From Tubulanus polymorphus (lineage: Eukaryota; Animalia; Nemertea), in NCBI RefSeq assembly GCF_964204645.1, contig NC_134030.1, forward strand, positions 11,057,947 through 11,121,946: a stretch of 64,000 bases of DNA, read 5' to 3'. The position numbers and the translations under genes are program-made. The notes under the pieces were generated by a model that saw only the letters and a list, made by a program, of their open reading frames with translations, had not been told where the DNA came from and did not search any database. This document shows positions 1 through 22,535 of the stretch, one piece after another. Numbering within the stretch: the stretch's first letter is position 1; each line of letters opens with the position of its first letter.

Positions 1-67
1 TGGAAACGTGAATGAATGGTAAAAACTCTACGTACATTGTATTTTATGATGTTTTTATTTTGCACAG

Positions 68-3000
68 ATGGATGGTTTTTTTAACCATGTGTGTCCTAGG
101 GAGCCACCCCTCCTCAGCAGATTACCATGCAATTGTACCTTGATTGAAGAAAAAATTATTACAGTCTTCGATTCTTATGGTATGTATAATTTGCTCAAGA
201 TTTAACTCTTGTTTTATAAATGACATTATCTGTCAGTAGGTTAAAATGCATGCCAGTATCTGGATTTAGATCTAAAAAAGTAAATTTCTTTAACCAAACA
301 GCAAGAATTCACCAGGACGGTTAAAATCAAAATCAACCATAATTTACTTAAGATTTATTCACTGCTATGTTTGATATTGATTAATAGGTCGATGTGATGC
401 GAAAAAAGTTCAGCACTGCGAATGTCAAAGTCTACCTATTGCTTTAACCAATCATCGTTTGTGGCCTGCATCTCCTTCCCAGCCAACATACGCTGCATCA
501 TTTGATTTTCTCAAACTTTTTACGACTCTCCAAATAGAAGGTCAGCTGTCAGCAAGAGCATTTGCAGACACGTATGCTGTGATGAACGCTTATTCGCTTG
601 ACCAGGTAAAGTAATACACCCCAAGTGCACATCTCCTGTCTATATTTCATTGTTAACTAAAATTTGATGTGCTTTGATGTTACGTAGGTCTCACAGTTGT
701 ATAGACTGCTGACAAGTGAGAGTCTGAGTAGATTTAGATTGATAACTTGTGAGGAATATCTGTTGTCGAAATCTTACACTTATAAGCGGTGCTTGGCTTG
801 TCCTGAGGTATGGCTTCTGGCTGCATTTCTGACACTGGTTTGCCATATAAAATAGACCCCGCCTTAACCGGTACCATTTGGACCTTCATTTAGATTGAAT
901 GGATTACCGGATAGGCAGAGTCTTCTGTATTCTGAAATATTTTTTGAAAATCAATTTTCATCTTCCTAGGATAATGGTAAACTTTTTGTGTCAGCTGATG
1001 CTAATTTTGGATTGGTTCGGAAAAAGAATGCAGGAAGGAGTTACTCTACCCCACAAATCTTAAGACCAATATTTTTAGACCAAGGCAATGTAGATTCGTA
1101 TGTTTTGAGATGTTGTGATACATCCAAACTTGATGATGGTGTAAATATTTTGGTTTTGAAAAAAATGGTTTTGATTGTATACAATATATATTAATATATT
1201 TAATTGAAATTGCCATTTGATTAATTTTTCCAGGAATGTAATAATTTCCAGGCAGGAACAGACATCCGTGCCAAAAACAAAGCTGTCAATTTGGATTATA
1301 CTGGTGTGATGGGTTTGGCATGTTCACGACATGAGATTCCACTAGCGATGCTAAATCTAAGGCACGGTGAAAGGTAATCTAGTTCTGTATCTTACATGTG
1401 CATATTTTGGAACCACAATCAATTGCAAATATGTAGCTCATGAAATCTTCTCTGATGAGTGCCAAGATCATTGGTTTCTGTGTATGTTCATTAGAGGCCA
1501 TTGAATATTAAAATAGTCAATGATTTCATGGAGTCCTTGGATCCCTAGTTTTGATGTGTGAGAATGTGTTTGATTCATATTCCAGGCTCAGTTACGTTGT
1601 TTCGCTGTTGAATCATATGGTTGCAGAGCTGCAAGTTGAGCATAATCAATTAGAATTGGTAGTTATGTATGACATAGCTTGTGTATTGCAAAAATATCTA
1701 AAGGTAGATGCCATTTCTTAGTTATTGCCCATAGACCATGTTATTGAAACAATATCCCTAGTTCCCAAATGAGAATGGTTTCCCTGAACCCATTCTAACT
1801 ACCACGTGCATTTGATATTTTTTCAGAAACCAGATATTTCAAGAATGTTGCCGGGTAATCTCCAATTTGCCATTCCATTATTTCACTGCTATGGTCATCA
1901 AGCCAATTGTCAAGTATGGATCTAACCTAGGTTTAAGTTTTCTTCTGACTGGATCATTATATTTATTTGAAAAAAAAAATGTTTTTTTATCTTTTATTAT
2001 CGCTCAGACAAACTTAAGTCCACGTCGCTTGGAAAATTTTGGTTTGACGGATGGAGAAACTATGGAACGATTTTGGTCTTATATCCGACGATTTGCTCTA
2101 ATCACAAAGGAACAGACTCCAAATCGTAGGTTAGAGTTACTTACATTAGCAGCCCAGCATTATACATGGAAGAAAATGAATAAAATTGGTAAGTAAATCC
2201 AGGATGGTATGGTTATCACATATTGATAATTTTGACATCATTTTTGTTTGTGGTTTCAGAATTCGCATTGTTTGAGCGGTTTAAGAGAGCAGATGTAGCT
2301 ATAGAACAAGCAGAAAAGGAACTTGCCGATATATCATTGATAATTCCAGGTCTCGATTTGTCACCATGTATCTTATTTGCTAGAGGAATAAAGCTGAATT
2401 TACATGTATCTTTTCATTATTTTTAGAAATAGCTACTGGGAGAGATGATATCTTTGAACAGTGGAATTTCCAGGAAAAGGTATCAGTGACTCATAAAAGA
2501 GATAAAGGTAAAAGTTATGGCATGGTGTTAACAAGTTTAACTCTTTCCATGTTGATCATCATTAATGAAATTCCACTCAGCTGTGCTGGACCTTTTCGGG
2601 GTTGTGAACACGTGGCATTGAACTAAGTCAACACCCCAAAACCAATAATTTTCTGAAAGCTCATGAATGGTTATATGATACACTCTAGGGTTTGGGTCCA
2701 TTGAGGGTCACGCTGACTTATTGACCTTTGAATTAGAAATCTGGGAAAAAATGGAGGTCACCTGCCATAAGTTACTAACAGCTTATTCGCTTGACTAGGT
2801 AAAGTAGGCACAGCAGTGGGCACAGCTTCGCCATCTAATAGTTCTATACTATAGTATACCAGATACATGACTGAGATCTCATCCACTTGACAAACCAATA
2901 AAAATTGCCCTATAAACTTTTTTTCAATGAAATTATTTTAGATATATCCCTGGCAAATGAGTTTGCCCACGACATCAGCTATAGTCATCTCATGAGGCGA

Positions 3001-4274
3001 AATATTTAACCCACGGTGTGGAAAGAGTTTTAAGGCCTGTTGTATTGATTATTTTTCTTTTTCAATATTAAGGAAACCCATCCTCATGGCAAGAAAAATA
3101 CGTCAAGCTCTTGTCTACATACTACAGTGTCTGGTAAGTTATAGTAATTATGAGATAAATCATCAGAGGTGCACTTATTAAGTACTTAAATGAAATATGA
3201 ATGTAAATATATTTTTTTTCTCAGTACAATGATAAAGAGCTCTAATGATGGTGCCACATGTATGACCCTTGTTAAAGAGAGAGATGAGTAAGTTGGAGTA
3301 ACTACGTACATTGGTATTAGTTTTCAGCTTGTTTTCTGTCAGTTTTCATTATGGTGGCATTGTGATGATACTGATACTGTTGTCTCGTTTAGACTGGATG
3401 CAAGACTTCAATCAATTGAAAATATTCGGAATCTCACTCGATGGTCCAGTTCTCAATACGAATACATCAATCTAATGGAAGCAATGAATGACAGGAAACG
3501 TTGTGCATATCTTCGACAAATGCGAACCTTAGCATGTGAGATGAAGGTTCTTGATAAAGCTTCAAAAAAACATGCAGGTGAAACTGCCATCCCATGTGAC
3601 ATAATTGCTACATTGTCATTCCTCCCTTGTAAATCCCTTCAGAACAGACATAACTCATGTATATACCCCACTAAATTTTAGGTGGCCAGAAAATTGCAAG
3701 TCGTCTGATCAAGCAGCGGAAGCGGGTTGTGAAAAGTATAAAAAAGGCCATTAACTTGTACAATTGTCTGACTGCGGATATCAACAGAATTAGTTCTAAA
3801 GATGCTCTGAATCTCGAAAGCACAATTTACCAGCCATTGTCTAACGAGGTTGGTCTTTATTCTTCTCGGTGGAGCTTGCTACAAAATTTTTCTCGTATTT
3901 GATTTCCTGTCTTGTTCTTCCTTTAGATGTCAGCTTTAACTACAATGCAACGTAAAGCCTTAGGCAGTTGGTTTACTCTGAAAAGGTCGATAGAAGAAAA
4001 GCAAATGGTTCAGGTTGAACTTTCTCATGTGATACAGAATTTAGAGATTCAACGAGCTGATCTTCTTGCTGCCAGGGAAGATGACGATGCAGATCAGGGA
4101 CTTAAGAGTTTGATATATGAAAAACTGAAGTTCCTTCATAAACGCATTTCCTCGTGTCAAGAAATATACTCAAATTTAGTGGAAAAACAAACTGCTGAAC
4201 CGGAAGATTCCAATTCCGCACTGTATACTTTTGATTCTGATGATCAAGAGTCTGACACAGAAGTAGTTGTTTAA
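68..4274 (+). CDS. KDZ-superfamily transposase with N-terminal CxC (CxC1-like) cysteine cluster; 15 coding exons, ~710 aa, reading frame intact
   Basis: Manually spliced GT-AG exons (68-179, 388-605, 688-807, 970-1140, 1234-1373, 1586-1703, 1827-1913, 2008-2188, 2260-2349, 2427-2507, ~3073-3133, ~3225-3287, ~3393-3577, 3682-3848, 3927-4274) join in phase. Motifs: CEC..LWPASPSQP (CxC), CLACP, SADANF, GLACSRHE..GER, YDIAC, IPLFHCYGHQANCQ, GLTDGETMERFWS, GQKIA..YN. The true start may lie upstream. Confidence 0.9.
1395..1552 (+). mobile_element. Diverged fragment of the HINE family (one core unit plus 3' end) inside KDZ intron 5
   Basis: Resembles the 154-bp unit (accacaatcaattgcaaa..tagctcatga..cattggtt) and ends gtccttggatccctagtt, like 6254-6270. 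Confidence 0.65.
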
Positions 4275-4789
4275 TTTTGAATTTAGGCCACACAAATTTG
4301 GAATTTAGGCCACAGAAAAGAAAACTCGCGCCCGACTGACCCGATATTTCGTCGTTTCAAATAATCATTTTCAGAATAAGATATAATTGCCTATCGACCC
4401 TTTTTCAAAATTTTGGGTGAAATAACTTTTTTCAAAAATATATTTGGCCGACCGACTACCAAACTCCTTTCTCGTAATTTTTTTTTTTTTAAATCAAATC
4501 ATTATATCGGCACAGATCATTATCAAAAAATATTTTATTACATCGGATGTTACAAATTTGATTGGAAATGGTGCAGCCATGGAAATGGTGCAGCCATGGA
4601 AATGGTGCAGCCATGCTCAGACAACTTTGCTAATCGGACATTGATGGCGACCTTGGATTGTAAAATTAAAATTCCCGGAATTCCGTGAAATATGTTCAAA
4701 ATATAATTTTTTATAGGTAATTATACAAACACCTCAATTTCCTTTTATTATTGTGGTCTACTAGCTGTTGATCATATTCCTGACTAAAA

Positions 4790-6270
4790 ATTTGAACTTT
4801 TTGAGGGAAATTTTTAAGACGCTTTGATCAATTACCTTGATCTTTCGGATGTATGTGTATCTTCCCAGGGCCCATCAGCATAACAAAAATTGGGTCGATC
4901 GGACTCAAGATGGCCGTCCTATGACCTTTTTAGTGCCCAAAAATGTAAATTTTGGCCCAAATTCTGAGCCCTGTAGCTTCCTACTGGTTTGCCATTTCTC
5001 AATTTGCAATTTGTGATGGGTATTCTTTGGAAAGGGATGTTTTAAGACCTGAGACAGTTATTTTTCATCAGCCAATTATGACGCAATTGGCAGCCATCTT
5101 GGTGTCGCCAGTACTCATTTGTAAGTGGGAAAAAGTTTTTCCACATTATATTGATACCTAAGCGTATTTTGATACCACAATCAATTAGAAAGTTGTAGCT
5201 CATAACGTGTTCTATGATTGTGGTGAGTTTCAAGGTCATTGGATTTTGTCAATGACCACCAGGGGGCGTTGAATAATACAATATCTTAGCATTTCTTTAT
5301 TATATTCGTACCTATGCATATTTTGTAACCACAATCAATTGGAAAGTTATAGCTCATGACATCATCTATTATTGTTGAGAGTTTTAAGGACATTAGTTAT
5401 TCTATATGGTCACCAGGGGGCGTTGAATAGTAGAATAACTTAGTATTTCCTTATTATATTGGTACTTAGGCGTATTTTGTTATCATGATCACTTGCAAAG
5501 TTGTAGTTCATGACATGTTCTATGATTGTGGTGAGTTTCGAGGTCATTGGGTTTTGAATATAGTCACCAGGGGGCGTTGAATAGTAGAATAACTTAGTAT
5601 TTCCATATTAGATTGGTAACAAGGCATATTTAGTTATCACAATCAATTACAAAATTGTAGCTGCTGACATGTTCTATGATTGTGATGAGTTTCAAGGTCA
5701 TTGGTTTTTGTATATGGTCACCAGGGGGCGTTGAATAGTAGAATAACTTAGTATTTCCATATTAGATTGGTAACAAGGCATATTTAGTTATCACAATCAA
5801 TTACAAAATTGTAGCTGCTGACATGTTCTATGATTGTGATGAGTTTCAAGGTCATTGGTTTTTGTATATGGTCACCAGGGGGCGTTGAATAGTAGAATAA
5901 CTTAGTATTTCCATATTAGATTGGTAACAAGGCATATTTAGTTATCACAATCAATTACAAAATTGTAGCTGCTGACATGTTCTATGATTGTGATGAGTTT
6001 CAAGGTCATTGGTTTTTGTATATGGTCACCAGGGGGCGTTGAATAGTAGAATAACTTAGTATTTCCATATTAGATTGGTAACAAGGCATATTTAGTTATC
6101 ACAATCAATTACAAAATTGTAGCTGCTGACATGTTCTATGATTGTGATGAGTTTCAAGGTCATTGGTTTTTGTATATGGTCACCAGGGGGCGTTGAATAT
6201 TGAAATTGTTAGATTGTTGAGCATTTGGAACCACTTCCCAAGTGGGCATGGTGTCCCTGGACCCCTAGTT
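4790..6270 (+). mobile_element. Helentron-associated non-autonomous element (HINE/DINE-1-like), 5'-truncated, with ~7 x 154-bp internal tandem repeats
   Basis: Reverse complement of 18126-19135. The 3' end is sub-terminal IR TCCCAAGTGGGC, a hairpin (ggtgtccctggacccc), then CTAGTT. ccagggggcg recurs at 5259, 5413, 5567, 5721, 5875, 6029 and 6183. Confidence 0.8.
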
Positions 6271-6815
6271 TTCAATCTCTGTTCATCCACTACTGTTCCC
6301 CTGTGAATTTGGAACAATATTTTTGCAAATATGTCCTGGCCAGCTTCAGTATTGATTTCTTTTCAATGGAAATTATAAATTATATCAAATGTGTTTTTAA
6401 GTATTTTTCTGAATTTTTGCATCAAATTATTGAATAAAAAACTCATGTACATCAGATTTTATTAACATAGAGTAAAATTTATAATAATTTATATTGTGAT
6501 ATATTTTGGCTAGAAATGCGATGTTTGTTTTTATTAGTCTATGCCTGTATGCGTGGTATGCTAGTGTAATGATATATGAATATTTATATAATATGTGTAT
6601 GTGTGTAATTATCGTGTTCATGAATAAATAGATATGTGACGCTAAACGTTCATTTGTCATTCACAATACATTGAAGATGATTTCGTTGTTCGTTATTTCT
6701 TTGAATATAATACGTGGATGAGCCGGCTAGATCTATTTTGTGGTATTTTGGATTGAAAATGATCTTCAAAAACCAGGAGGCCCGTAGAGTCGAACAACAA
6801 CAACAACAGCAACAA

Positions 6816-9806
6816 CGAAACTTCTATTTCACGCTTAAAATAGTCGAAAAATGTGGATATTGATGATTGTTTAATGTTTTCTGCCTGCTTGGTCGTTCTT
6901 GTCTCAGTATGTTTCTGGTGAATTGCGAATATGGTTATATATTAGCAGTTGCGCGTTTCTGATATCGTCGTTCAAACAAGAACGACCAACAATGAGAAAT
7001 TGATCGAAACTTCTATTTCACGCTAAATATAGTCGAAAAATGTGGATATTGATGATTGTTTAATGTTTGCTGTCTGCTTGGTCGTTCTTGTCTCAGTATG
7101 TTTCTGGTGAATTGCGAATATGGTTATATATTAGCAGTTGCGCGTTTCTGATATCGTCGTTCAAACAAGAACGACCAACAATGAGAAATTGATCGAAACT
7201 TCTATTTCACGCTAAATATAGTCGAAAAATGTGGATATCGATGATTGTTTAATGTTTTCTGCCTGCTTGGTCGTTCTTGTCTCAGTATGTTTCTGGTGAA
7301 TTGCGAATATGGTTATATATTAGCAGTTGCGCGTTTCTGATATCGTCGTTCAAACAAGAACGACCAACAATGAGAAATTGATCGAAACTTCTATTTCACG
7401 CTAAATATAGTCGAAAAATGTGGATATTGATGATTGTTTAATGTTTTCTGCCTGCTTGGTCGTTCTTGTCTCAGTATGTTTCTGGTGAATTGCGAATATG
7501 GTTATATATTAGCATTTGCGCGTTTCTGATATCGTCGTTCAAACAAGAACGACCAACAATGAAAAATTGATCGAAACTTCTATTTCACGCTAAATATAGT
7601 CGAAAAATGTGGATATCGATGATTGTTTAATGTTTGCTGTCTGCTTGGTCGTTCTTGTCTCAGTATGTTTCTGGTGAATTGCGAATATGGTTATATATTA
7701 GCAGTTGCGCGTTTCTGATATCGTCGTTCAAACAAGAACGACCAACAATGAGAAATTGATCGAAACTTCTATTTCACGCTAAATATAGTCGAAAAATGTG
7801 GATATCGATGATTGTTTAATGTTTTCTGCCTGCTTGGTCGTTCTTGTCTCAGTATGTTTCTGGTGAATTGCGAATATGGTTATATATTAGCATTTGCGCG
7901 TTTCTGATATCGTCGTTCAAACAAGAACGACCAACAATGAGAAATTGATCGAAACTTCTATTTCACGCTAAATATAGTCGAAAAATGTGGATATCGATGA
8001 TTGTTTAATGTTTTCTGCCTGCTTGGTCGTTCTTGTCTCAGTATGTTTCTGGTGAATTGCGAATATGGTTATATATTAGCATTTGCGCGTTTCTGATATC
8101 GTCGTTCAAACAAGAACGACCAACAATGAGAAATTGATCGCAACTTCTATTTCACGCTAAATATAGTCGAAAAATGTGGATATTGATGATTGTTTAATGT
8201 TTTCTGCCTGCTTGGTCGTTCTTGTCTCAGTATGTTTCTGGTGAATTGCGAATATGGTTATATATTAGCATTTGCGCGTTTCTGATATCGTCGTTCAAAC
8301 AAGAACGACCAACAATGAAAAATTGATCGAAACTTCTATTTCACGCTAAATATAGTCGAAAAATGTGGATATCGATGATTGTTTAATGTTTGCTGTCTGC
8401 TTGGTCGTTCTTGTCTCAGTATGTTTCTGGTGAATTGCGAATATGGTTATATATTAGCAGTTGCGCGTTTCTGATATCGTCGTTCAAACAAGAACGACCA
8501 ACAATGAGAAATTTATCGAAACTTCTATTTCACGCTAAATATAGTCGAAAAATGTGGATATTGATGATTGTTTAATGTTTTCTGCCTGCTTGGTCGTTCT
8601 TGTCTCAGTATGTTTCTGGTGAATTGCGAATATGGTTATATATTAGCAGTTGCGCGTTTCTCACGCCAACAATGAGAAATTGATCGAAACTTCTATTTCA
8701 CGCTAAATATAGTCGAAAAATGTGGATATTGATGATTGTTTAATGTTTTCTGCCTGCTTGGTCGTTCTTGTCTCAGTATGTTTCTGGTGAATTGCGAATA
8801 TGGTTATATATTAGCATTTGCGCGTTTCTGATATCGTCGTTCAAACAAGAACGACCAACAATGAGAAATTGATCGAAACTTCTATTTCACGCTAAATATA
8901 GTCGAAAAATGTGGATATTGATGATTGTTTAATGTTTTCTGCCTGCTTGGTCGTTCTTGTCTCAGTATGTTTCTGGTGAATTGCGAATATGGTTATATAT
9001 TAGCAGTTGCGCGTTTCTGATATCGTCGTTCAAACAAGAACGGTGGACCAACAATGAGAAATTGATCGAAACTTCTATTTCACGCTAAATATAGTCGAAA
9101 AATGTGGATATCGATGATTGTTTAATGTTTTCTGCCTGCTTGGTCGTTCTTGTCTCAGTATGTTTCTGGTGAATTGCGAATATGGTTATATATTAGCATT
9201 TGCGCGTTTCTGATATCGTCGTTCAAACAAGAACGACCAACAATGAAAAATTGATCGAAACTTCTATTTCACGCTAAATATAGTCGAAAAATGTGGATAT
9301 CGATGATTGTTTAATGTTTGCTGTCTGCTTGGTCGTTCTTGTCTCAGTATGTTTCTGGTGAATTGCGAATATGGTTATATATTAGCAGTTGCGCGTTTCT
9401 GATATCGTCGTTCAAACAAGAACGACCAACAATGAGAAATTTATCGAAACTTCTATTTCACGCTAAATATAGTCGAAAAATGTGGATATTGATGATTGTT
9501 TAATGTTTTCTGCCTGCTTGGTCGTTCTTGTCTCAGTATGTTTCTGGTGAATTGCGAATATGGTTATATATTAGCAGTTGCGCGTTTCTGATATCGTCGT
9601 TCAAACAAGAACGACCAACAATGAAAAATTGATCGAAACTTCTATTTCACGCTAAATATAGTCGAAAAATGTGGATATTGATGATTGTTTAATGTTTTCT
9701 GCCTGCTTGGTCGTTCTTGTCTCAGTATGTTTCTGGTGAATTGCGAATATGGTTATATATTAGCAGTTGCGCGTTTCTGATATCGTCGTTCAAATAAGAA
9801 CGACCA
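6816..9806. repeat. Satellite array, 189-bp unit, ~16 near-identical copies
   Basis: cgaaacttctatttcacgc recurs at 6816, 7005, 7194, 7383 and onward. One unit has an internal deletion (~8660) and one a 4-bp insertion (~9042). Confidence 0.97.
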
Positions 9807-9940
9807 CTATAATTACTATAATAATCGTGGTGACGTACTTGCTTCGTATTTTGTTTTAAACTTCATCGAGTGTTTGAAGCGATGACGTTTGTGAAATACA
9901 ATGATTTTGATTATAATCTAAAATCGTACGGTCCAGGCAA

Positions 9941-9952
9941 TGCGCATGCGCA
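9941..9952. promoter_or_regulatory. NRF1-type palindrome TGCGCATGCGCA upstream of the zinc-finger gene
   Basis: Exact consensus about 135 bp before the ATG at 10087. Confidence 0.5.
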
Positions 9953-10086
9953 TGCACAACACGGGTGCGTCAAGAGTAACATCTAACATCAGCTCTCTTT
10001 TATCATACTCGAAGCGACGATACGATCCAATTCTTTTCTTTCTATAAATTATATCAATTATATCAACTGAACGCATCTGCATCGTG

Positions 10087-11768
10087 ATGGCTGAATGTCT
10101 AGGCGTGGATCTGGATGCAAGTAGCGATATTAGTGGAATAGAACCATTCGATGTAAGTGATGAAGACGATAGTGACAAAGAACAAGGCCGGCAGAAGAAA
10201 GTCGGCAGTGAAACCCCGATCCTCGGTACGCCCGTTGAAACAGATGGGCTCCGACTCAACAACCAGTACCCGGCCAACAAGCTTACTGGAGCTGCTGTAA
10301 AAGGTCGTAATTGTTTAAATTTATATACTGTCAAGGCATAGCTGTAGGACTTGGTATTAGCTGATCTGATGTCAATGATAAGTAAGAAACCTCTTTATTT
10401 ACTTCGCACAGAGTCAGAGAGAATACGAGTGGGATTTGCGTATGTTCGTAAGTTTCCTCCCAGATGTATGGGTGTGATAAATGTAGCGGAAAATACACAG
10501 GCCCAAAAACAGATCTGTGGACTACATGATATTCCACCAACATGCCCCTATGGAAGTGGGGATCTGGTCGTTGAAATACACGGAAATGGCTATGGTTATT
10601 TGTAAGTATGGACAATAAATCCTCTTATCAACCAAAATTCTTATCTTACCTGTACTAAACTATCTTCTAATTGAATATCTTTCTTTTCAGCTTTTATACT
10701 CATGAATTTCAAGAATTTCTTCCCTCCTGCCCAATTATTGGCGAAATTGATACGATTAGACGCGTGGAAGCTCTGCGGTTAAAGTATGGTGGAGCATTGC
10801 CAATTGGGCCATGGCCAATGGAGGAAGTTAAAGAACATGCAAAATCGATTATACCATTGTTTATGGAAAAAAAAGCAATTGGACTTAAGCCCTCCCTAAA
10901 TATTGGACTTCATTTCCTCGCATGGAAGTATGATTCGATTAGTTTCGAAGAACAGTGGAATATTCATGTCGACCAATTAAAAAAGCTCAAGCAGCAACAG
11001 GACATCGAAGAAAATGTATCTGTAAAACGTGTTGATGTTACGACAACTTTGTCCAGGCGTAAAAGTAATAGACGTCGTGTTGTTTCCGTTCTAAAAAGTG
11101 ACGTTAGCGAAAAGAACCAGGACTCGTCATCAGTTATTGCGCCCGATACAGCTACAGTATTATGTAAAAAAGTAGACAGTGGATATGAATGTTCGGTGTG
11201 CGGCAGAATTTTTGGCAATAAATCAAATTTTAATCGTCATTCAAGAATACATTGCAAAGAACTGAAATTTTCATGCGAGATATGCGGTAAAAGCTTTACC
11301 GATAAGAGCAATTTGAACGTTCATGTTAAAAGACATGTGCCAAAAGGACAATATGCTTGCAATATTTGTGGATTAAGATTTATGTCTAGAGGCAACCTGA
11401 CTGACCATAAAAAGCGTCACACTTCTGAAAAAGTTGTTATTGCTGATCGATGTATTTTGCCTTACTGCAAAAAGTATGGTGAAAAATTTAAAGATCTCCT
11501 TCAGCATGCTCGACAAATGCATAAACTAGATACGATATGTGCCTATAACGAAGCGGTTAAAAAAAGTATTGACAAAAAATTAGGTAGTTCGAGTACCACC
11601 ACAAATTGCCATTGTCCGAACCATGATATCTGGATATACCGTTGGGTTGGCAGCAATCATAATTGTTATCTATGTGAGTGTCCTATGAAATTTACTCGCA
11701 TATTCCACGAGGAGAAGAAAGCACATATTTGGACACGTACTTGTCGCTATTCTTCTCATTTGTTTTGA
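10087..11768 (+). CDS. C2H2 zinc-finger protein with unrecognised N-terminal domain; 3 exons, ~494 aa
   Basis: Exons 10087-10303, 10412-10601 and 10691-11768 join in phase. Three canonical fingers (CSVC..H..IH, CEIC..H..RH, CNIC..H..RH), a fourth atypical CILPYC..H..MH finger and a C-terminal Cys/His cluster. AATAAA at ~12204. Confidence 0.85.
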
Positions 11769-12944
11769 AAATCTTGGCTTTTAATCATAAGTAGCAGGGT
11801 CAATCGGTTATACTCATGGCCTGTAGTTACTTTCAAAGTTAGTTTTCTTTTTTGAAGTTTGATGCTTTTTAAAAGTTGTATTTTATTATATTGTGTCTGT
11901 GTACTATCATATCAACTGTAATAACTACAGGATTATTATCCATATAGATATCAAATGATAGAATTTATTTGTTATAATAACTTAATGATGATTTTTAGAA
12001 GGGTGATGCTGTTTAAAAGTTGTTTTTTATTATATGTACTATTGACTGTAATAACTACGTACAGACTTATGATCCATAAATATCTTAAATAATAGAATTA
12101 ATTAGGCCTGTAAAAACTTTGCGAGGATTAATTGCAATTGTATTATTATGATCTAAGTTGCACAGCATTTCATTATATTTTTTCTCTGCAAAAGGTTATT
12201 TCAATAAAAACTGTTTTTAAATGTACAGGAAACTGAATTTAATTTTTTTAGTTTTGGAATGTGGCAGGTAGATGAAATCTAGTGAATGACTATCCTTATC
12301 AGCCAAACTTCGTGTACTGTTAAATGTTGGTTGTTGACTGGGTTGAATTTTTTTCTCGGGATCATTTTGGTTTACATTATCGTAAAAAGAAATATAACTC
12401 ATGTACCGGTAGAGCGAGTTTCAAATCAGAAGTTGACTCGTGAAAATGTTTCGATCCATCATGCATTTAATGCGTGCAACATTGCGATTCATCCATCATC
12501 CAAACTACCGGTACCAGTACCACCCGGCATTGCACACCGCAGCAGCCGTGCGACTGATAAGAGTTCAACTCACGACATAAGATCTCTCAGATCCTATTTC
12601 TTCCAGTTCAAAAAAAAAATCTTAAAGGTAAGAATTAAGTTGGTCACGTTGCCTTTAAACAGCTAGCCTAAACGACTCATTTCGTAACTACTGGGCAAAA
12701 ATAGGGGATTCGAGAGCCTAAGTCTGGAGGAGCGAGAGAGAACAGGTCCTATTCATCTGCTCATTGACTCTCACTGAAAAGGCTTGTTGCTATAAGTGTG
12801 GCGGGCTTGGTGTATGGCATTGTGTATTGTCTGTTAACTCCTACAATGATGAATAGACGCATTGTTAGTACCTCAGGCTCAGACTCAGTGAGGAATGAGT
12901 ATTGAATTATTAAGTCAGTAGGCCTACTAAAAAGCAAACTAATC

Positions 12945-13113
12945 CAGGGGCGGTGGAAGCAATTTTTTATTGCTGCAGCCAAATGCCGATTTTGGACAGA
13001 TTCTAAATATTGCCACAGCGAATTTACTTAATTTCTTCAAAAACTTGGTATTAAAAATAAAACGTCATCAGTAAATTATTGTCGCTGCAGTCGCTGCACT
13101 TCCAACGCCACTG
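12945..13113. mobile_element. Small MITE
   Basis: TIRs CAGGGGCGGTGGAAG / CTTCCAACGCCACTG; TAATC on both flanks. Confidence 0.6.
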
Positions 13114-13313
13114 TAATCAATTTATCTACCTTTATTATGCATCACTTTGTTTAGGGTTTAGCTTCGAAAGGGTGAAATGATCAAATATCCACTACCATTT
13201 TTGATCTACCAATTGGCCATTTTGAAGTAGGACTAGACTATAGGCCTAGCAGCCACATCATTTTTCATTGAGTGAATGAAAAGATGTCAACAATTATTCT
13301 TTTTTATTTTTAG

Positions 13314-16300
13314 ATGGACAAAGAATTTGAAAATACCCATTGGCCATTATTAAACACCAAGGAAAGGTAAGCATGCACTTGGGCAGGTCTCTACTATCAA
13401 ACCATTCAGACCTAGTTCTTATAATTAACTGATACATGCACTATCATTACGTTGTTGACTTAGCCTAATGTCGTTCCAAGATCAGAGATAACTTATGACA
13501 ACCTCTCTGATGAACTTTGGCGAGTTTGACTATGAAAGATCTTTTAAGCTACTTACATTTAACAGTCGTTAACTGCTTTAGTTTCAATTTGAATTCAGAC
13601 AGTCTACTTTGGTGTCCTATTATGAGAAAGGGATGACTCATTGTGGAAATGAATTTACCAAAGGAATGGTACGAGAAGCCAGTGTTGCTACAGGCATGCC
13701 AGAGAAATCAGTTAAGGTAGGCCTATATAACTTTTTCTTATGATCTAGGGCCTACGGTGTTTTCTCCAGACTTTGTGATGAAGCACTTTTACTAAAATGA
13801 TAAATTGATAAACTGTATTTTAAAAGTTTTAGTTTATTCTGTTTAAGAAATGGATAGAGAACCACAAGGTACAATGTCGAAAGAAAGCTGGGATTTACAA
13901 CTATGAAAATCTGAGTAAGAAGCAGCGCATTCGATCATGCAGACCGTACGATGTTTATCTCTCTGATAAAAAAAAAGGAAAATGTAAGCTAGATACATGT
14001 TGATTTTAGTCAACCTCTATGTAGTTGCTGAGCCTGTTTAAAGTGAGGTGTGTGTAATTTGTATATCATTTTAGGCCAGGGAAATTGGAATGACCAAACA
14101 GAGGAAGCAATGGCTTCATACGCACAGAGGGCTGCAAGCCACAGCCAGCCTATCGGCCCAGAAAATAAAGAAAATAACATTGAATTTCTGGTGCATGAAC
14201 TAGAAAAAAAGGTAGGCCGTTTCATTTAACCATTAATGTTTATGTTATTTGCAGTCATCTAAATAACATAATTATACTTCAGGTAAATAAATTTACTTCG
14301 ACAACAGAAAAGTTGGATGTTGTGGCTATTGCTATTACTAAGGATGGGAATAGAATGTTTATATGTGGATCACCAATTCCAACAAAGTGGTTTGAAAAAC
14401 AGAGAGAGGTTCAGCAAAGTCTGAAGTCACTTTATCAGCCAGGTAAAGATAATTCAAACATACACACTTTCACTATCATTAACTAAGATAATTCAGGCAG
14501 TCTCAGTTTCTATACGTTTGTTGCTACATTCAGATGATGACAATCAATTAGAAGATGTCAACGTACTGCGATCGAAAGTCACAGATATGTTCAATCGTAA
14601 ATACAGTAAGCATATATTTTAGCTACTTGATTTGATTATACATTCAAATAGTCGAAAAATTCAGCATTTGACAATCGTAATCATTTCATATGCGCCATTA
14701 TATAGCTTCAGCAATAAAGGGTATCTCCGGGACGAGATGCAGCTACAAAGCGGTTGATGCTGGTCAAGTCAGGGCATTTAATTTGCCAACTGGAATAATT
14801 TTGAAAAGACCATCATCTTATGCAAAAAACTCGCTGAAAGCACTTTTGAAAAAGGAAGATAAAATATACTTCGAAGGTACACTGTTTCAACTTACCGGTA
14901 ATAGATATTTAACACACTAAGTTAGACACACTATTACATAATATATCAACATTTATCTTGATGTTGATATATTGAATGTCATTATTAGGCCACACAAAGA
15001 AATACCGTAGTTTCTCAGGTTTTTTCTGGAAAGTGACGCTGGTGAGCAAATTATATTTTCATAGCTCCTTTGAAAAAGAGTTGAAATAAATAGCTCGAAA
15101 CCAGAGACTTATATAAGAGATGCGGGAAGTAAGTAAATAACAAATACAGCGGTGCGGGCGAGCAGGATTTAATTTTTATAATAAAAAAAGACGATTCAGA
15201 TTGATGGTTTGCCAATGCGGGTTAGCGCATTTGAATTTTCGATTTTAATTTAATTAATTTCGATTTTTACTTTTTTTATGATGCGGGTGGCATTTGACCT
15301 TGAAGAACTAGGGTATTTCTTTGTGTGGGCTTAATGAATTGAAATACAATGTACTGGTACTGGTATATGTCTTAATGGAATATGGAAGGATAACATCAGA
15401 ATTATTTCTTATTAGTTGATACTATGAGCCACGAAGAAGCAGCGTCACCAACTGAAGAACTTCAGTTTCCAGAAGCCACTGAAGGTACAACTAAGTCTTT
15501 TTGTCTTATAAACTTACAAGCTATGGTAATATTGGGGTAAATTATCTTGTTTCTCATTGTAGATTCAGATGCTACAGAGATCATCAGAGGTACGTATTCT
15601 TATGTTATTCTTACGTTTAAGCAAAAAAGATATTGTTGTATCGCTAGGCTGAATTATTCTTTCTTTTTTTCATCAGAACCTAATATGGCAAAAAGAAAAG
15701 CCGAAGTCCTCACAAAGAAAACAGGGAAATCAGGTACGTTTTTAACACTAAGCTATGCAGTCTTTGATGAAAATATAATTGCACAAAATCAATTAAAAAA
15801 TTGTTCTCTTTCAGTAATCAAAACTGGCATCAAGAAAAGGAAAATAAATAATGGTAGGGTATGCACGTTTAAAGAAATATTTCAAAGCAGCCAGATCAGC
15901 ATTATTGTGTTTTATAAGGTAAAAAATTGATACCTTGTTTGTCCTCGGCAATAAATTTTCTAATCAGTTTATTTCTGTAACTGCCAGGTCTGTTATTGTT
16001 AGCTTGATCATGGTTTCAAAAAAAGTAAATAAACAGAGTAGATACATGGCCACCTGCGTCAATTTTTAAGCTCAGAAATAAGAAACATGGTATCAATTCT
16101 TTTTTCCTTATATCACAAATACAATATGCTTTTTTCCAAGTAATGCATTGGTCTGTTATTTCAAAATCAATTGATATGTTTTAATGGAAATGAAATGGAA
16201 ATGAAACTGATGGATAATATTAGAATTATTTCTTATTAGTTGATACTATGAGCCACGGAGAAGCAGCGTCACCAACTGAAGAACTTCTGTTTCCAGAAGC

Positions 16301-17501
16301 CACTGAAGGTACAACTAAGTCTTTTTGTCTTATAAACTTACAAGCTATGGTAATATTGGGGTAAATTATCTTGTTTCTCATTGTAGATTCAGATAGTGCA
16401 GAGATCATCAGAGGTACGTATTGTTCTTTATATTTAGAAAATAAATAAAATGAGATATTATTGAATAGCTAGGCTGAATTATCCTTTCTTTTTTTCAACA
16501 GAACCTATGACAAAAAGAAAAACCGAAGTTGTCACAAAGAAAAAGGAGAAATCAGGTATGCAGCCTTCAATTCAGTTAATACCAATCGAATACAGCATAA
16601 CCTTTCTAGTGAACACTTCGCTTCCTAAGAAATTGTTCACTATAGAGAGGTGTTCACTAATTGGAGGTAGCACATATTTTTCCGCAAAACCCAGGTTTTA
16701 GAAACCCTTCTTGAAGAACACTCCACATTGAAACCCCCTGTCACGTAAAACTCTGCATTTTTTGCTAGTCTAGACAGTGAACCCGCGTTCAATGCAGAGT
16801 TCAGGCGCCACAATTGACCTTGAACTTGCACTAAAGATGTTGTTCCTTACTACCGAAACTGTGTTAAGTGTAGACGCTGCTCACCGTGAACGCGGGTTTT
16901 CATTGAACCCAGGTACGTTGAAACCTGGGTACAACACGCTAGTGAGGACAAGGTTATTTTGGGATGGGACCACTGTTCACTATAAATACTCATTTGGTAA
17001 AGTTCACTAAATGGTGGTTCTGTTTAATTGAAAATGAGTAGGGAAAATTTGGTTCCCGGGTAAAAGTGTTCTCTAAGGGAGGCGTTCACTAAATAGAGGA
17101 GTTCACTAAGGGAGGTGTTCACTGTAGTTTCGTTTAAAAAAAAAATGATTGAGTTTTTTTTCATTTTAGCAAATAAATCCAGAAAGAAACCAAATGATGG
17201 TATGTATTTATGCAGAAACAGCATCTTAAAGCGCAAAATTTCAATTGTAATATGTAGCCTGTGGTAGTATATTTGATATCAATCTTTAATTCCAGACATA
17301 TTCTTGGTGGAAAAAATTGTTGGTCATCAATCGAAAGGAGGTCAACAATATTACAAAATTAAGTGGTTGGACTTCTCTTCAAAACACAACACATGGGAGC
17401 CGATTGAAAACCTGACATCCGTTATGGATATGGTGATCTCGTATGATAAAAAGATACAAAGTATTGTAGAAAAACATCAACCAATTGAATTGAAAGAATA
17501 A
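13314..17501 (+). CDS. Multidomain nuclear protein: HDX-like homeodomain + HMG-box-like segment + GTF2I-like repeat + C-terminal chromodomain; 16 coding exons, ~470 aa
   Basis: In-phase exons start at 13314, 13599, 13848, 14075, 14283, 14534, 14706, ~15416, ~15563, ~15677, ~15815, ~16239, ~16387, ~16502, ~17170 and 17296. Segments: QSTLVSYYEKGMT..ATGMPEKSVKKWIENHK; RPYDVYL..WNDQTEEAMASYAQRA; LRSKVTDMFNRKY..NLPTGIILKRPSSY..IYF; FLVEKIVGH..YKIKWLDFSSKHNTWEPIENL. A probable 5'UTR exon ends at 12627. Confidence 0.82.
14988..15330. mobile_element. MITE in intron; related ends at ~4285 and ~38540-38573
   Basis: TIRs GGCCACACAAAGAAATACC / GGTATTTCTTTGTGTGGGC. Confidence 0.75.
16593..17124. mobile_element. 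Tc1/mariner-type MITE with a nested inverted-repeat insert (~16685-16935)
   Basis: TA|CAG ... CTG|TA ends; repeated gttcacta motifs. Confidence 0.6.
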
Positions 17502-18125
17502 AAGAATTTATTATAGTACAAGAAACCAATTCATTTACATTTTTCATTCATTGAGATCGGAGTAGAGCTGTTGAGGAAACTTCACTTGCTTTGGTGAATT
17601 TAACAATTAAATTATAGTTTAGTCTACATCAGTCTTTCTGGAAAAGAAAATATTAGAAATGCTGAAATCAATACATATATTGTGATTGGAACAGAGCCCA
17701 AATGGATTACTGAACGAAATGGAATACTGAGCAAATCCCCAAGTTCCTTGAGTGCCATAATTCAGGTACCGGTAATTTGTTGGGGGCTATTACAACTTGC
17801 CTGTTATTTGATTGTATGAATCGCACATAGGTTATCGCACATAGGTTATGTGAGAAACTTGATATCGAAGGGTCCATTCATCTTGTTGATTCTGTCCAAA
17901 TGAAATCGAATATAAATGTAATTACAAATGTGATACTCATGTATAAAAGACGATTTTTAAGTTTAACACATCTACTCTATTTAGTCGTATTACAAAATCT
18001 TTACAATGCAATCAAATATCAACTAGGGGTTAGGGGACGCAATCGATGAGCATGCCCCCATTTGGATCCGAGCAGCCTGCAGACGGTCTCTGTGGCAGTA
18101 CCCAAGAAGTTTTTATTGTGATCGA

Positions 18126-19392
18126 AACTAGGGGTCCAGGGACACCATGCCCACTTGGGAAGTGGTTTCAAATGCTCAACAATCTAACAATTTCAATATT
18201 CAACGCCCTCTGGTGACCATATACAAAAACCAATGACCTTCAACCCAATACAATCATAAAACATGTCAGCAGCTACGATTTTGTAATTGATTGTGATAAC
18301 AAAAAATGCCACGTTACTAATTTAATATGGAAATACTAAGTTAATCTACTATTCAACGCCCCCTGGTGACCATATTCAAAACCCAATAACCTTGTAACTC
18401 ACCATATTCATAGAACATGTCATGAACTACAACTTCGCAATTGATCATGGTAACAAAATATGCCTAGGTACCAATATAATAAGGAAATACCAGGTTATTC
18501 TACTATTCAACGCCCCCTGGTGACTATGTAGAATTACTGATTTCCTTAAAACTCACCACAATCATAGATGATGTCATGAGCTACAACTTTGCAATTGATT
18601 GCGGTAACAAAATATGTATTGGTACAAATATAATATAGAAATACTAAGATATTGTATTATTCAACGCCCCCTGGTGGCCATATACAAAAAACAATGAACT
18701 TGAAACTCACCCCAATCATAGAACACATTATACTCTAAAACTTTCTAATTCATTGTTGTAACAAAATATGCTTAGGTACCAATATAATGTCGAAAAACTT
18801 TTTCCCACCTACGAATGAGTACTAATGACACCAAGATGGCTGCCAATTGCGTCATAATTGGCGGATCAAAAATACCTATCTCGGGTATAAAACATCCCTT
18901 TACAAAGAATACCCATCACAAATTGCAATGAGAAATGGCAAACCAGTAGGAAGCTACAGGACCTAGAATTCTGGCCAAAATTGACATTTTTGGGCACTAA
19001 AAAGGTCATAGGACGGCCATCTTGAGTCAGATGGACCCAATTTTTCTTATGCTGATGGGCCCTTGGTAGATTCAAATATATTCGAAAGATCAAGGTAATT
19101 GATCATATCGTCTTCAAAATTTCCCTCGTAAACTTCGAAAATGTGTAAAAAGTGCTGATTTTGGCAAACAACAATGGCTGCCAGTCGGCCATGTTGATTC
19201 TGATAGGGCCAGTTTTTGGGCTGAAGATGTGTCTAGGGTAGATACATGTATAAACCAAATATCAAGACATTACCTTGAAGCGTCTTCAAAACTTCCCAAA
19301 ATAACTGGATTCCGTCTACGGACAGACGAACAGATGGACGGACGAAAAGTGAACGCAATAGCCCGCTGGGACTTAAGTCCCAAGTGGGCTAA
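18126..19392 (-). mobile_element. Full-length HINE (Helentron-associated element) with 4 x 154-bp core repeats
   Basis: Minus strand reads: T-run, AGCCCACTTGGGA sub-TIR within a hairpin, (GTCY)n microsatellite, tandem cores, TCCCAAGTGGGC, hairpin, CTAGTT. Confidence 0.85.
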
Positions 19393-19837
19393 AAAAGTTT
19401 CATTTTTAAGTCATAAAAATTCACCCTATGTGGAAAATATGTTCGTCAGTCATGGTGACAATGTTCAAATTCAAGAAATCTCACAAAATGGAGGATTTTC
19501 TCTCCTATTCAACTGGACTAAAGGAGTCTTTTTGCCAATCCATCTAATTGGTGCAGAACTGGAATAATATTGGATTTCGGTTGTTGTCCACGATTTTTGG
19601 GAATCTGTTAAGACCTAAATGAGGTACGTTCCCCAAAAAGTAAGCGAGATATCCCAACATAGTACGGAAGCCCTGAGACGAATCTTTATGTCGCGTAATT
19701 TCATAATGTCGTGCATGGCCAAATAAACTCGAAATCTCATTAACTTGGGAAGTTATGAACTGGGGAACTCGTGAACCCAAGATGTCGTCTCAGGGCTTCC
19801 ATACAACAGAGAAACAGGCGTGAAGCTAACACTAACA

Positions 19838-20008
19838 GGGGTCATTCATTTATTACACGCTAGAGCCAGGAGGGGGGAAGGGATAAGTGCAATAGCGTAC
19901 TGTAATGCTTAATGTAGATGCAAAAATGGCCGATTTTGCATACTGAGGGGAGGGGGGTTGAAAAATTCAAATACTATGCGTACTGTACGTAATAAATGAA
20001 TGATCCCC
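19838..20008. mobile_element. Short MITE
   Basis: TIRs GGGGTCATTCATTTATTAC / GTAATAAATGAATGATCCCC. Confidence 0.7.
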
Positions 20009-20061
20009 GAAGTAGGCCTGCTAATAATGTCAAGCATGAGGCGTGGAAAACCCAAACTACT

Positions 20062-21010
20062 ACGTCTATTTCAACTTGACTTGAGAGCACATCAGGTGGC
20101 CTAGCTCGCTCATTTTTGGTAGTACATACCTGGTCTTATTAGACCAGAAAGCACTGGCAGTGGATCTAAAACATCATTTTTTAATCCATTTGAAACTGTA
20201 TTAAAAGATATCCAAAACGTCTGCATTGAAAGGGGATTAGGCCGCCTAAAGCCGGGTGCACACCTTTGCGATCATCGCGACATCGTATCATCGCATGCGA
20301 TGTAGCGATGACACGATGAAAATCGTATCATCGCCGCATACCTTTGCTATTTTTATGAGGGCCTCGAGTTGGATTCAATCACGTGACTGAGCCGCTGATT
20401 TTGAACATCATATGACTGCTTCATCCTTAATTCTGATTGGTTACTAAAAATTTTTATCCGGAACATCGGCAGCGTAGCCCGCAGACCTTTCTTATCTCAC
20501 GGAAAAATCGCATACGAAAATAAGAAACATGTTTGATTTGTTGCGATGTAATCGGCTCCGGATGCCACCGCATACCTTTACAATGATGCGATAAAACCAT
20601 GCGATGAAGCGATCATACGATCAATCGCAAAGGTGTGTGCCGGGCTTAAATAAAGAAATTTGACTCAATAATTTGAAAGTTTAACAATAGGTTTCCATGC
20701 CTACACACCAAACTTCAGTTGAGTTGGTAGGCATGGAAACATATTCAGATATTGATAAACATTTAAATCATAATCATGGAGTCTCTTTTCTCTCATGAAC
20801 CTCTTTCAATGCAGACTTTTTGGATGTCCTTTAAAGCAGTTTAAAATTGATTAAAACACGATGTTTTAGGTCAGCTGCCATTGCTTTCCGGTCGTAGTGA
20901 GACTTTTATCAGGACAGGTATACGTGTACCACCATAACTGACTGAGTAGGCCACCCGGTATGCTTCTCACGAAATGTCACAAGTCAGGTTGAAATTGAAA
21001 ATGAAATAGA
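20062..21010. mobile_element. Old foldback MITE with ~180-bp imperfect inverted arms
   Basis: 20065-20235 is an imperfect reverse complement of 20800-21010. Confidence 0.65.
20250..20646. mobile_element. PIF/Harbinger-type MITE nested in the previous element
   Basis: TIRs AGCCGGGTGCACACCTTTGCGAT / ATCGCAAAGGTGTGTGCCGGGCT; TAA target duplication. Confidence 0.8.
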
Positions 21011-21363
21011 CATTAGGCCACCTTACTTACCAGTGTACACGGGGATTGGATGCAGATTGTCGTCTTGATCGAATTCAGGCCTAAAATCCTTGTAAAACGC
21101 GATTGTTATGCCAGCCGGAGGAGTTTTGTATGGCCCAAATAGGCTTCGTCCTTGAGAAGATGGATCTGTCGATAACAACCGACAGTCATGCCGAACTAAG
21201 TACCAAAATATAAATTTGCGACCAACGCGCGCGCCCTTCTGGCAATGAGTATCTAAGAAGGGTTACCATAATATAGTATACTATAACACGAGGCGATAGA
21301 CTATCAAATGAAGGTTTACCCTTCTTTGATAAAGTATCGACGAAGGGGATGTGTATCGGGTGA

Positions 21364-22535
21364 CATATCTCACTCATCACTCGCAATAAACAATGCGGCG
21401 ATTGTAACGATTAGACTTACAATTTCAAATATTATTCGACAAACCATAGGAATCCATCTCACAGTGCCAAATGAGCGTACTCTACATATTTCCCTAGCTA
21501 AACATGAAACGAACATTTCAAACAACGGGAAACGTGGATTTTATTGTTTTCCAGTGCGGCGTTTTTCGAAAACTTACAGAAACTTCGAACGAACATTTAT
21601 TTCGATTTTAGTATCATCAACTGCAATTAATTTGGCCGTCATCGAAACTGCGTTGGATGTTTCGACACCAGCATTCGGACATGGAATTCATTCACCGACA
21701 AAATTTTCATTTGAATTTTAAAAATTGAACGCTTAGTTTCAAGTGTACGTACGCATTACTTTGAATGTTTTTAATGCAGCCTACGTTACCATGAATTTAT
21801 CAGTATTATAGGTGTGTGGGTTCGGAATTCGCTTCCTAAATCACTCGAATTACGAGATAATTAATACGCGTATTCAAATTCATTGACTATGGGAATAACG
21901 ATTAACCATAAGATAATCGCACAGTTTAACCTCAATTATGATAATCTATATATCAATAAATTAGTTTCATAGAATTATAATTTTTACATCAATACGTGTA
22001 TATTAACCATTGTTGCTGGTTAGTTTAATTAATAAGTAGACTGATTATTTTACATGAATGAAATCCATGAGATATGATTAATCACCTGCCAGCTAGCGGG
22101 ACCCGAACTGTTAGGGGTGAAGCTTTAGAACGTGGGAATTTTAATTTCGTACCTGTATTAGTACGAACAATGATTAAGGACCTTGAAATTCGATATGCGT
22201 AGCAAATATAGCAAATTATTCTAATAAGCCGATATAAAGGTAACGTAAATGAGACATTTCACACATCACGATTCGAATTTCTAAGAGCACACGTAGGCCA
22301 ACAAATCGGCTAATCTCTGTCTGACAGGTTAAAGCTAATCCGTTATAGTGCAGCAGCTGATATTGGCCGAATCCGTGAATTTTGGTGAAAGTTTTGCAAT
22401 TTTCAGTTACAACAAGTGGAAAATCAAAGATAGAGAAAATCGATAATCCAATGTGGTAATTTTCGATTTATTTATTTATCGATAAATCATTTGCAGATAT
22501 TCTGTAGAAACTTGGCTAAGATGGTGAACTTAAAC
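21364..22535 (+). repeat. ~1.17-kb direct repeat, copy 1
   Basis: Colinear and highly similar to 34850-36015. Confidence 0.9.

Follow-up and report, generated by a model that had tools for sequence, protein, structure and literature searches.

Do three neighbouring genes in the genome of the palaeonemertean ribbon worm Tubulanus polymorphus, namely a KDZ transposase gene, a C2H2 zinc-finger gene and a gene joining a GTF2I-like repeat to a chromodomain, belong to one mobile element, and what might the two accessory genes contribute to it? We addressed this question for a stretch of 64,000 nucleotides (the window; C6:11057947-11121946) by searching the T. polymorphus assembly (268 Mb, 77 contigs). 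An earlier note, made from the sequence alone, had read positions 68-17501 as a giant multi-gene KDZ transposon whose accessory proteins provide DNA recognition and chromatin targeting. The copies found in the genome leave hardly any doubt that the three genes are parts of a single mobile unit. Very probably, positions 68-17501 make up about two-thirds of a single copy of a KDZ-type cut-and-paste DNA transposon of 25.9 kb that is autonomous and was recently active. The three genes are co-oriented and have short introns, as the earlier note had described; they lie on the + strand, and their introns are of the GT-AG type.

Extent, termini and target sites of the element

DNA searches of the genome with each third of the region returned six near-full copies on five contigs, with 96-100% identity and identical gene order and orientation. 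They are located on C6 (the window copy), at C8:2.54 Mb, C12:8.54 Mb and C2:16.34 Mb, and at C4:6.64 Mb and C4:13.75 Mb (the two C4 copies being designated C4a and C4b). Loci L001-L058, which have small gaps in the satellite, formed the basis for comparing the copies. When the DNA searches were extended outward, all copies had the same right boundary, corresponding to window position 21362, and the same left boundary, at L033:5429, 4,572 bp upstream of the window start. The C6 copy delimited by these common boundaries is 25,934 bp long. Its in-window portion (1..21362, + strand) comprises element bases 4573-25934, and the 4,572 bp outside the window (L033:5429-10000) contain the left terminal inverted repeat (TIR) and transposase exons 1-2. 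The transposon is therefore larger than the unit proposed for 68-17501. The left end is outside the window, as had been expected; the right terminus (21224-21362) and the right copy of the target-site duplication (TSD; 21363-21369), both thought to be out of sight, are within it.

Reading the junctions showed that the termini are identical across copies (CACCCGATAC...GTATCGGGTG), with the terminal letters CACCCG...CGGGTG, i.e. 5'-CAC...GTG-3'. The TIRs are imperfect, 139 bp long and approximately 94% alike, with the motif CCGATAC occurring twice per arm; the right TIR (21224..21362, - strand) is complementary at this level to the left TIR (L033:5429-5567). A genome search found the terminal sequences nowhere else except in a relic on C10 (described below). 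Perfect 7-bp TSDs flank five of the six copies: ACATATC (C6), ATGAATG (C12), GCAACGT (C4a), AGTAAAT (C2) and GCTACGC (C4b). These sequences are mutually unrelated, and extension to 8 bp fails. In C6, the right TSD copy is at 21363..21369 and the left copy at L033:5422-5428.

Host DNA flanking the insertion in C6 has undergone tandem segmental duplication (87-94% identity), L032:911-L033:5428 plus window 21363-22520 corresponding to window ~23942-36001. The second duplicate supplies an empty site: at 34848..34854, a single ACATATC stands where a 93%-identical duplicate of both flanks is contiguous. The earlier note had named dispersed loci with the same gene linkage, sharp shared boundaries, short TIRs with a TSD, and empty-site haplotypes as evidence that would support a mobile unit. 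The linkage recurs in all six copies on the five contigs, and the boundaries are sharp and common at both ends. TIRs and TSDs are present (the latter in five of six copies), although the TIRs are not short, and an empty site exists, although it is paralogous instead of allelic.

State and age of the copies

Divergence was measured against the C6 copy, in which every exon core is open. Every exon core is likewise open in C8 (non-coding divergence from C6 0.02%) and in C4a (0.39%; a single in-frame 6-bp indel). C2 (0.59%) has an ~18-kb insertion replacing transposase exon 1, a stop in exon 13 and a 7-bp indel in the GTF2I/chromodomain gene (gene 3), which is why RefSeq predicts just a 236-aa protein there. 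C12 (0.63%) has 1-bp frameshifts in the transposase gene and gene 3 and a 1.3-kb deletion, and C4b (2.0%) has many stops and frameshifts and an ~33-kb insertion within the zinc-finger exon. Thus, two genes are broken in C12 and C2 and all three in C4b; C6, C8 and C4a may be intact, judging from their open exon cores. C6 and C8 differ at three positions in ~16.6 kb, but C8 is not a haplotig of C6, since the flanks are unrelated and the satellite array lengths differ. The very low divergence between copies (0.02-0.6%) suggests that activity of the element may be continuing.

Substitution density relative to C6 was compared between the exons of the three genes and unique non-coding element DNA. 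It was lower in the exons in four of five pairwise comparisons, the differences in C8 being too few for a test. In C4a, C12 and C2, the density was 0.16-0.25% in exons and 0.39-0.63% in non-coding DNA (Fisher p 1e-4 to 0.011); in C4b, the values were 1.45% and 2.0% (p 0.016). The broken copies show that decay after insertion is neutral, so that selection on the transposing lineage is the best reading of the excess exon conservation. By this contrast, which derives from few substitutions, selection on the element appears to preserve the two accessory genes.

An old deletion derivative of a related element, 11.3 kb long and 9-17% diverged, was found on C10 (C10:5845514-5856832, minus strand; L044-L045). 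This relic has both ends and TIRs at 73-93% identity. Transposase exons 1, 4 and 6 and the linker exons of gene 3 survive in it as remnants; the zinc-finger gene was not found.

The KDZ transposase gene

Pfam and Protein Data Bank (PDB) searches were run exon by exon or with database proteins, and exon chains were checked per junction. The transposase model consists of 15 exons totalling 2,556 nt (~851 codons) joined by phase-compatible GT-AG junctions, of which exons 3-15 occupy 68..4274 (+ strand) in the window. The approximate positions of exons 3-8 are 68-179, 388-605 (CxC2), 697-807, 970-1140 (DANF), 1234-1373 and 1586-1703 (YDIAC), and those of exons 9-15 are 1827-1913 (FHxxxHxxxCQ), 2008-2188 (DGE..ER.WS), 2260-2349, 2427-2479, 3343-3577, 3682-3848 and 3927-4274.

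In single-exon Pfam searches, the stretch 381-611 matched CxC2 (36.1 bits) and CxC1 (27.4 bits), and the KDZ domain (PF18758, cut-off 26.6 bits) was matched at 1225-1374 (31.0 bits) and 1816-2193 (38.6 bits), with a weak match of 15.6 bits in the exon stretch 1524-1718. The four motifs on which the earlier note had based its transposase call were all recovered in open frames, as VSADANFGL, VMYDIAC, FHCYGHQANCQ and DGETMERFWS. The element thus combines the features by which the KDZ superfamily is recognised, namely a KDZ domain with its motifs, an N-terminal CxC zinc module, and defined termini with a TSD.

The zinc-finger gene and the 189-bp array

The zinc-finger gene (RefSeq LOC141907197, 494-497 aa; 9940..11768, + strand) was delimited with RefSeq proteins and Pfam. 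It has alternative first exons at ~9940 and 10087, a second exon ending at 10602 and a third exon at 10674-11768, and a protein search with this large exon identified LOC141909803 as its RefSeq counterpart on contig C8. The C2H2 protein predicted earlier is borne out by three C2H2 fingers (61.6 bits in Pfam) in the 365-aa exon stretch 10671-11765, and exon 3 encodes a conserved C-terminal Cys/His motif beside them. The N-terminal half of the protein gave no matches, and its AlphaFold model had a predicted local distance difference test (pLDDT) score of 34.

One full-length homologue was found, a 379-aa protein with 36% identity on the marine metagenome contig JAAUYH010106536.1 (L046 = L059). 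It has the same exon split and upstream exon as the zinc-finger gene and a nearly invariant C-terminal Cys/His motif, and identical proteins are encoded on further marine metagenome contigs, those of TARA among them. When the T. polymorphus genome was searched with the first 200 residues encoded by the zinc-finger exon, the six copies and one 53%-identical fragment (C6:12217675-12217959) were matched. This fragment is degenerate, with four stops, and lies 1.1 Mb from the window with no KDZ match nearby.

Between the transposase and zinc-finger genes is the 3-kb satellite that had been noted earlier, an element-specific tandem array of ~16 units of 189 bp (378-bp dimer) at 6816..9806. The array occurs in the six copies only, with a length ranging from 0.54 kb (C4b) to 4.3 kb (C12). 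Each unit contains a perfect 14-nt inverted pair, TTGGTCGTTCTTGT / ACAAGAACGACCAA, with the arms 73 nt apart, which is a candidate protein-binding site.

The GTF2I-repeat/chromodomain gene

Gene 3 (13316..17501, + strand) was defined by Pfam and PDB matches, a RefSeq protein (P0010, from the C2 copy) and junction phases. Exons 1-7 form a phase-compatible GT-AG chain (13316-13366, 13582-13716, 13848-13983, 14075-14211, 14283-14442, 14534-14605 and 14706-14866), the last two encoding the GTF2I repeat. The 3' exons, fixed by the RefSeq protein, begin with duplicated linker exons (~15406-15760 and ~16230-16557). A small basic exon follows near 17169, and the chromodomain exon (17295-17501) is the last. 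The linker exons are tandemly duplicated in five copies; C2 has an ~470-bp deletion leaving one hybrid set.

The fusion of a homeodomain, a GTF2I repeat and a chromodomain proposed for this gene was upheld for the latter two domains. The GTF2I-like repeat (PF02946) is split by an intron, so a single exon scored just 25.9 bits, which is marginal; on the RefSeq-spliced P0010, which is 97-100% identical, it scored 41.3 bits over model positions 1-73 of 75 (cut-off 27). The Chromo domain (PF00385) scored 55.6 bits in the exon stretch 17277-17498 and 52.9 bits on P0010. For the homeodomain candidate region, which is also split by an intron, single exons had no match in Pfam at E<=10 or in PDB sequences.

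The protein has one GTF2I repeat, whose PDB matches are repeats of GTF2IRD1 and GTF2I. Repeats of these two proteins bind DNA. The best PDB matches of the chromodomain were CBX5 (HP1-alpha), MPP8 and Rhino, all of which are readers of methylated lysine 9 of histone H3 (H3K9me). In the alignment to CBX5, F, W and F of gene 3 stand opposite Y, W and F, which we take to be the aromatic-cage residues Tyr20, Trp41 and Phe44. A chromoshadow domain was not found in P0010 by Pfam, the protein ending 15 residues past the Chromo match.

A six-frame genome search with the GTF2I exon matched the six element copies only. A library-wide search with this exon matched 19 proteins. Eight were looked up, and the five named ones comprised GTF2IRD1 of vertebrates, a three-repeat protein of Capitella, a crinoid fusion of repeats with C2H2 fingers, and the Tubulanus protein itself. 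The protein search with P0010 matched P0010 itself alone.

The zinc-finger gene, gene 3 and the 189-bp array are confined to the element, and no host paralogue was detected in the genome. The earlier note would have given up its reading if the two genes had been single-copy, syntenic host genes in related species and other KDZ copies lacked them. This refutation did not come about: the two genes are not single-copy host genes, both occurring only inside element copies.

Proposed role of the accessory proteins and alternative explanations

In the mechanism that we propose, the transposase would bind the TIRs via its zinc module and excise the element, which it would then reinsert by making a staggered cut of 7 bp. 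Element DNA, either at the TIRs or in the 189-bp array, would be bound by the zinc-finger protein and by the GTF2I repeat, and the chromodomain would tie the DNA-bound complex to H3K9-methylated chromatin, thereby steering insertion to safe sites or managing the element's own chromatin. We put a chromatin-tethering role of this kind forward tentatively and regard it as rather less likely than not. A wider proposal, which we regard as speculative and somewhat unlikely, is that this DNA transposon carries its own chromatin-addressing module, consisting of a fusion of an HP1-like H3K9me reader with a TFII-I repeat, a private zinc-finger protein and a private 189-bp array. Such a module might steer integration into heterochromatin or hold a state that permits persistence, as a cut-and-paste counterpart of chromoviral integrase targeting, and the element might be a possible source of the vertebrate TFII-I repeat.

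The accessory proteins of the same transposon could also be cofactors for end recognition or nuclear import, like the Myb-like protein of PIF/Harbinger, the chromodomain being incidental. This is possible, although we would not expect it. Two-protein DNA transposons are established for PIF/Harbinger (a transposase plus a Myb-like partner), and both proteins described here have sequence-specific DNA-binding modules, the C2H2 fingers and the GTF2I repeat. However, the strong chromodomain score and the F, W and F at the presumed cage positions argue that the chromodomain is used, and the TIR motifs are absent from the internal arrays, so a shared binding site is not evident. That both extra genes are captured host genes riding as passive cargo seems to us rather improbable. 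It would agree with the detection of other KDZ loci in the genome without detectable homologues of both genes, and with the loss of all three genes alike in decayed copies. By contrast, neither gene has a host paralogue in the genome, the exons of both are less substituted than the non-coding DNA of the element, and the older derivative with 9-17% divergence retains remnants of gene 3; in addition, the zinc-finger homologue in the marine metagenome is split into exons in the same way, and its C-terminal motif is strongly conserved.

Two further explanations would dissolve the unit itself. The accessory genes might belong to a second, unrelated transposon nested in the KDZ element, which does harbour nested repeats. 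This is very unlikely, as the transposase part and the accessory part were never found alone in the genome, there is no internal TIR pair or TSD around the accessory genes, and the internal junctions are common to the six copies. Least credible, to the point of being nearly negligible, is a segmental duplication or assembly artefact of a host gene cluster in place of a transposon. The near-identity of C6 and C8 and the lack of a TSD in C8 point in that direction, but the copies, spread over five contigs, have unrelated flanks, ends identical to the base, 139-bp TIRs, five perfect 7-bp TSDs and an empty paralogous site, and the length of the satellite array differs between C6 and C8.

Several observations nevertheless weigh against an active KDZ transposon with functional accessory genes. 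The transposase model is a phase-compatible exon chain and not a transcript, in which junctions 1-2 and 12-13 are weakly supported and junctions 12-13 and 13-14 are the least certain. Other KDZ loci without the zinc-finger and GTF2I/chromodomain genes were detected in the T. polymorphus genome, and KDZ was not found within 10 kb of the GTF2I-repeat genes of Capitella and the crinoid Anneissia. A metagenome scan with the zinc-finger alignment returned just the known contig and generic C2H2 genes, with no KDZ, GTF2I or chromo neighbours. Mutation or alignment bias may contribute to the contrast between exons and non-coding DNA, given how few substitutions it comprises, and the empty site (34848-34854) is paralogous, not allelic. 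Finally, no TSD was found for C8. Its left flank (L034:1800-3003 = C8:2537322-2538525) is a low-copy repeat confined to C8:2.5-3.65 Mb (six copies, 94-97% identity), and the five other copies of this repeat continue with sequence that is not present right of the C8 element. As the right flank differs from the continuation in the five paralogues, one flank was rearranged after or during insertion.

Comparison with known systems

Among the fungal KDZ elements, Kyakuja families have 7-bp TSDs and CA...TG termini and are reported to lack TIRs and to contain TET/JBP genes (PMC12730594). The Tubulanus element resembles Kyakuja (Kyakuja-1_LB of Laccaria bicolor; PMC12730594) in its KDZ domain, N-terminal CxC module, 7-bp TSD, CA...TG termini and possession of a chromatin-related accessory gene, and its TSD length suggests a placement with Kyakuja. 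It differs in its 139-bp TIRs, animal host, length of 26 kb, multi-exon genes, and C2H2 and GTF2I/chromodomain genes replacing the TET/JBP dioxygenase.

Zisupton, known from fish, nematodes and fungi (PMC9297572, PMC12730594), also has a KDZ-domain transposase, TIRs and, in animals, a multi-exon gene. However, Zisupton, like Dileera, has 8-bp TSDs (PMC12730594), as opposed to the 7 bp found here, where an 8-bp TSD could not be recovered. Animal Zisupton elements are multi-exon and encode one large protein of up to ~1400 aa (PMC9297572), and an accessory gene set has not been reported for them (PMC9297572, PMC12730594). The demonstrably mobile, 'gigantic' KDZ1-KDZ3 of Cryptococcus neoformans, of the Dileera clade, are 9-11 kb long, have TIRs of 236 bp and TSDs of 8 bp, and contain additional genes whose function is unknown (PMC11343200). 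They share with the Tubulanus element a large multi-gene organisation, long TIRs and a CxC+KDZ transposase, but they are fungal, shorter and have 8-bp TSDs, and their extra genes have not been reported as zinc-finger or chromodomain proteins.

The presence of a distinct DNA-binding protein beside the transposase is a point of likeness with PIF/Harbinger. Nuwa families, which are related to Harbinger, encode a transposase plus a Myb/SANT protein (PMC12730594).

With respect to the chromodomain, the closest parallel is with Ty3/gypsy chromoviruses, in which a chromodomain is fused to the retroelement integrase and the mobile element supplies its own histone-mark reader. The Tubulanus chromodomain, for which targeting is a proposed role, instead belongs to a DNA transposon, where it is joined to a TFII-I-type repeat in a protein distinct from the transposase. 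Unlike the HP1 family, gene 3 encodes no chromoshadow domain, and vertebrate TFII-I proteins have several repeats as opposed to the one in the gene 3 protein.

A full-text literature search found no KDZ transposon linked to a chromodomain or GTF2I gene. In the literature searched, multi-gene KDZ elements were described in fungi only and none had the gene set found here, Tubulanus transposons were not described with respect to KDZ, and, outside fungi, well-characterised KDZ transposons were limited to single-gene Zisupton elements in a few animals. The Tubulanus element represents a complete animal KDZ family with exact ends and an element-restricted three-gene set. With it, several questions become testable: whether large eukaryotic DNA transposons employ DNA-binding and histone-reading partners of their own, by what means an element of 26 kb can transpose, and whether there is an exchange of TFII-I-type repeats and chromodomains between transposons and host regulators. 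If still active, the element would be a candidate large-cargo transposition system.

Other repeats within the element

No Rfam families were found in window 1-36000. A 1.27-kb high-copy dispersed repeat is nested at 18124..19390 (+ strand) and is precisely absent from C4b, the oldest copy. Its presence in the other five copies and the clean empty site in C4b indicate that the master lineage gained the insertion and then spawned the other five. An old nested copy of the ~1.3-kb dispersed repeat, inverted relative to 18124-19390, is at 4791..6271 (- strand) in all six copies. A 154-bp array at 5134-6199, initially considered as a separate satellite, was rejected as such, the array being internal to this nested repeat. 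The ~1.3-kb dispersed repeat with its internal 154-bp array has at least 35 genomic copies with 91-97% identity. A further repeat of ~410 bp is nested in the 5' region of the element (L033:5849-6258) and has dozens of genomic matches on both strands with 82-89% identity, so that it looks like a miniature inverted-repeat transposable element.

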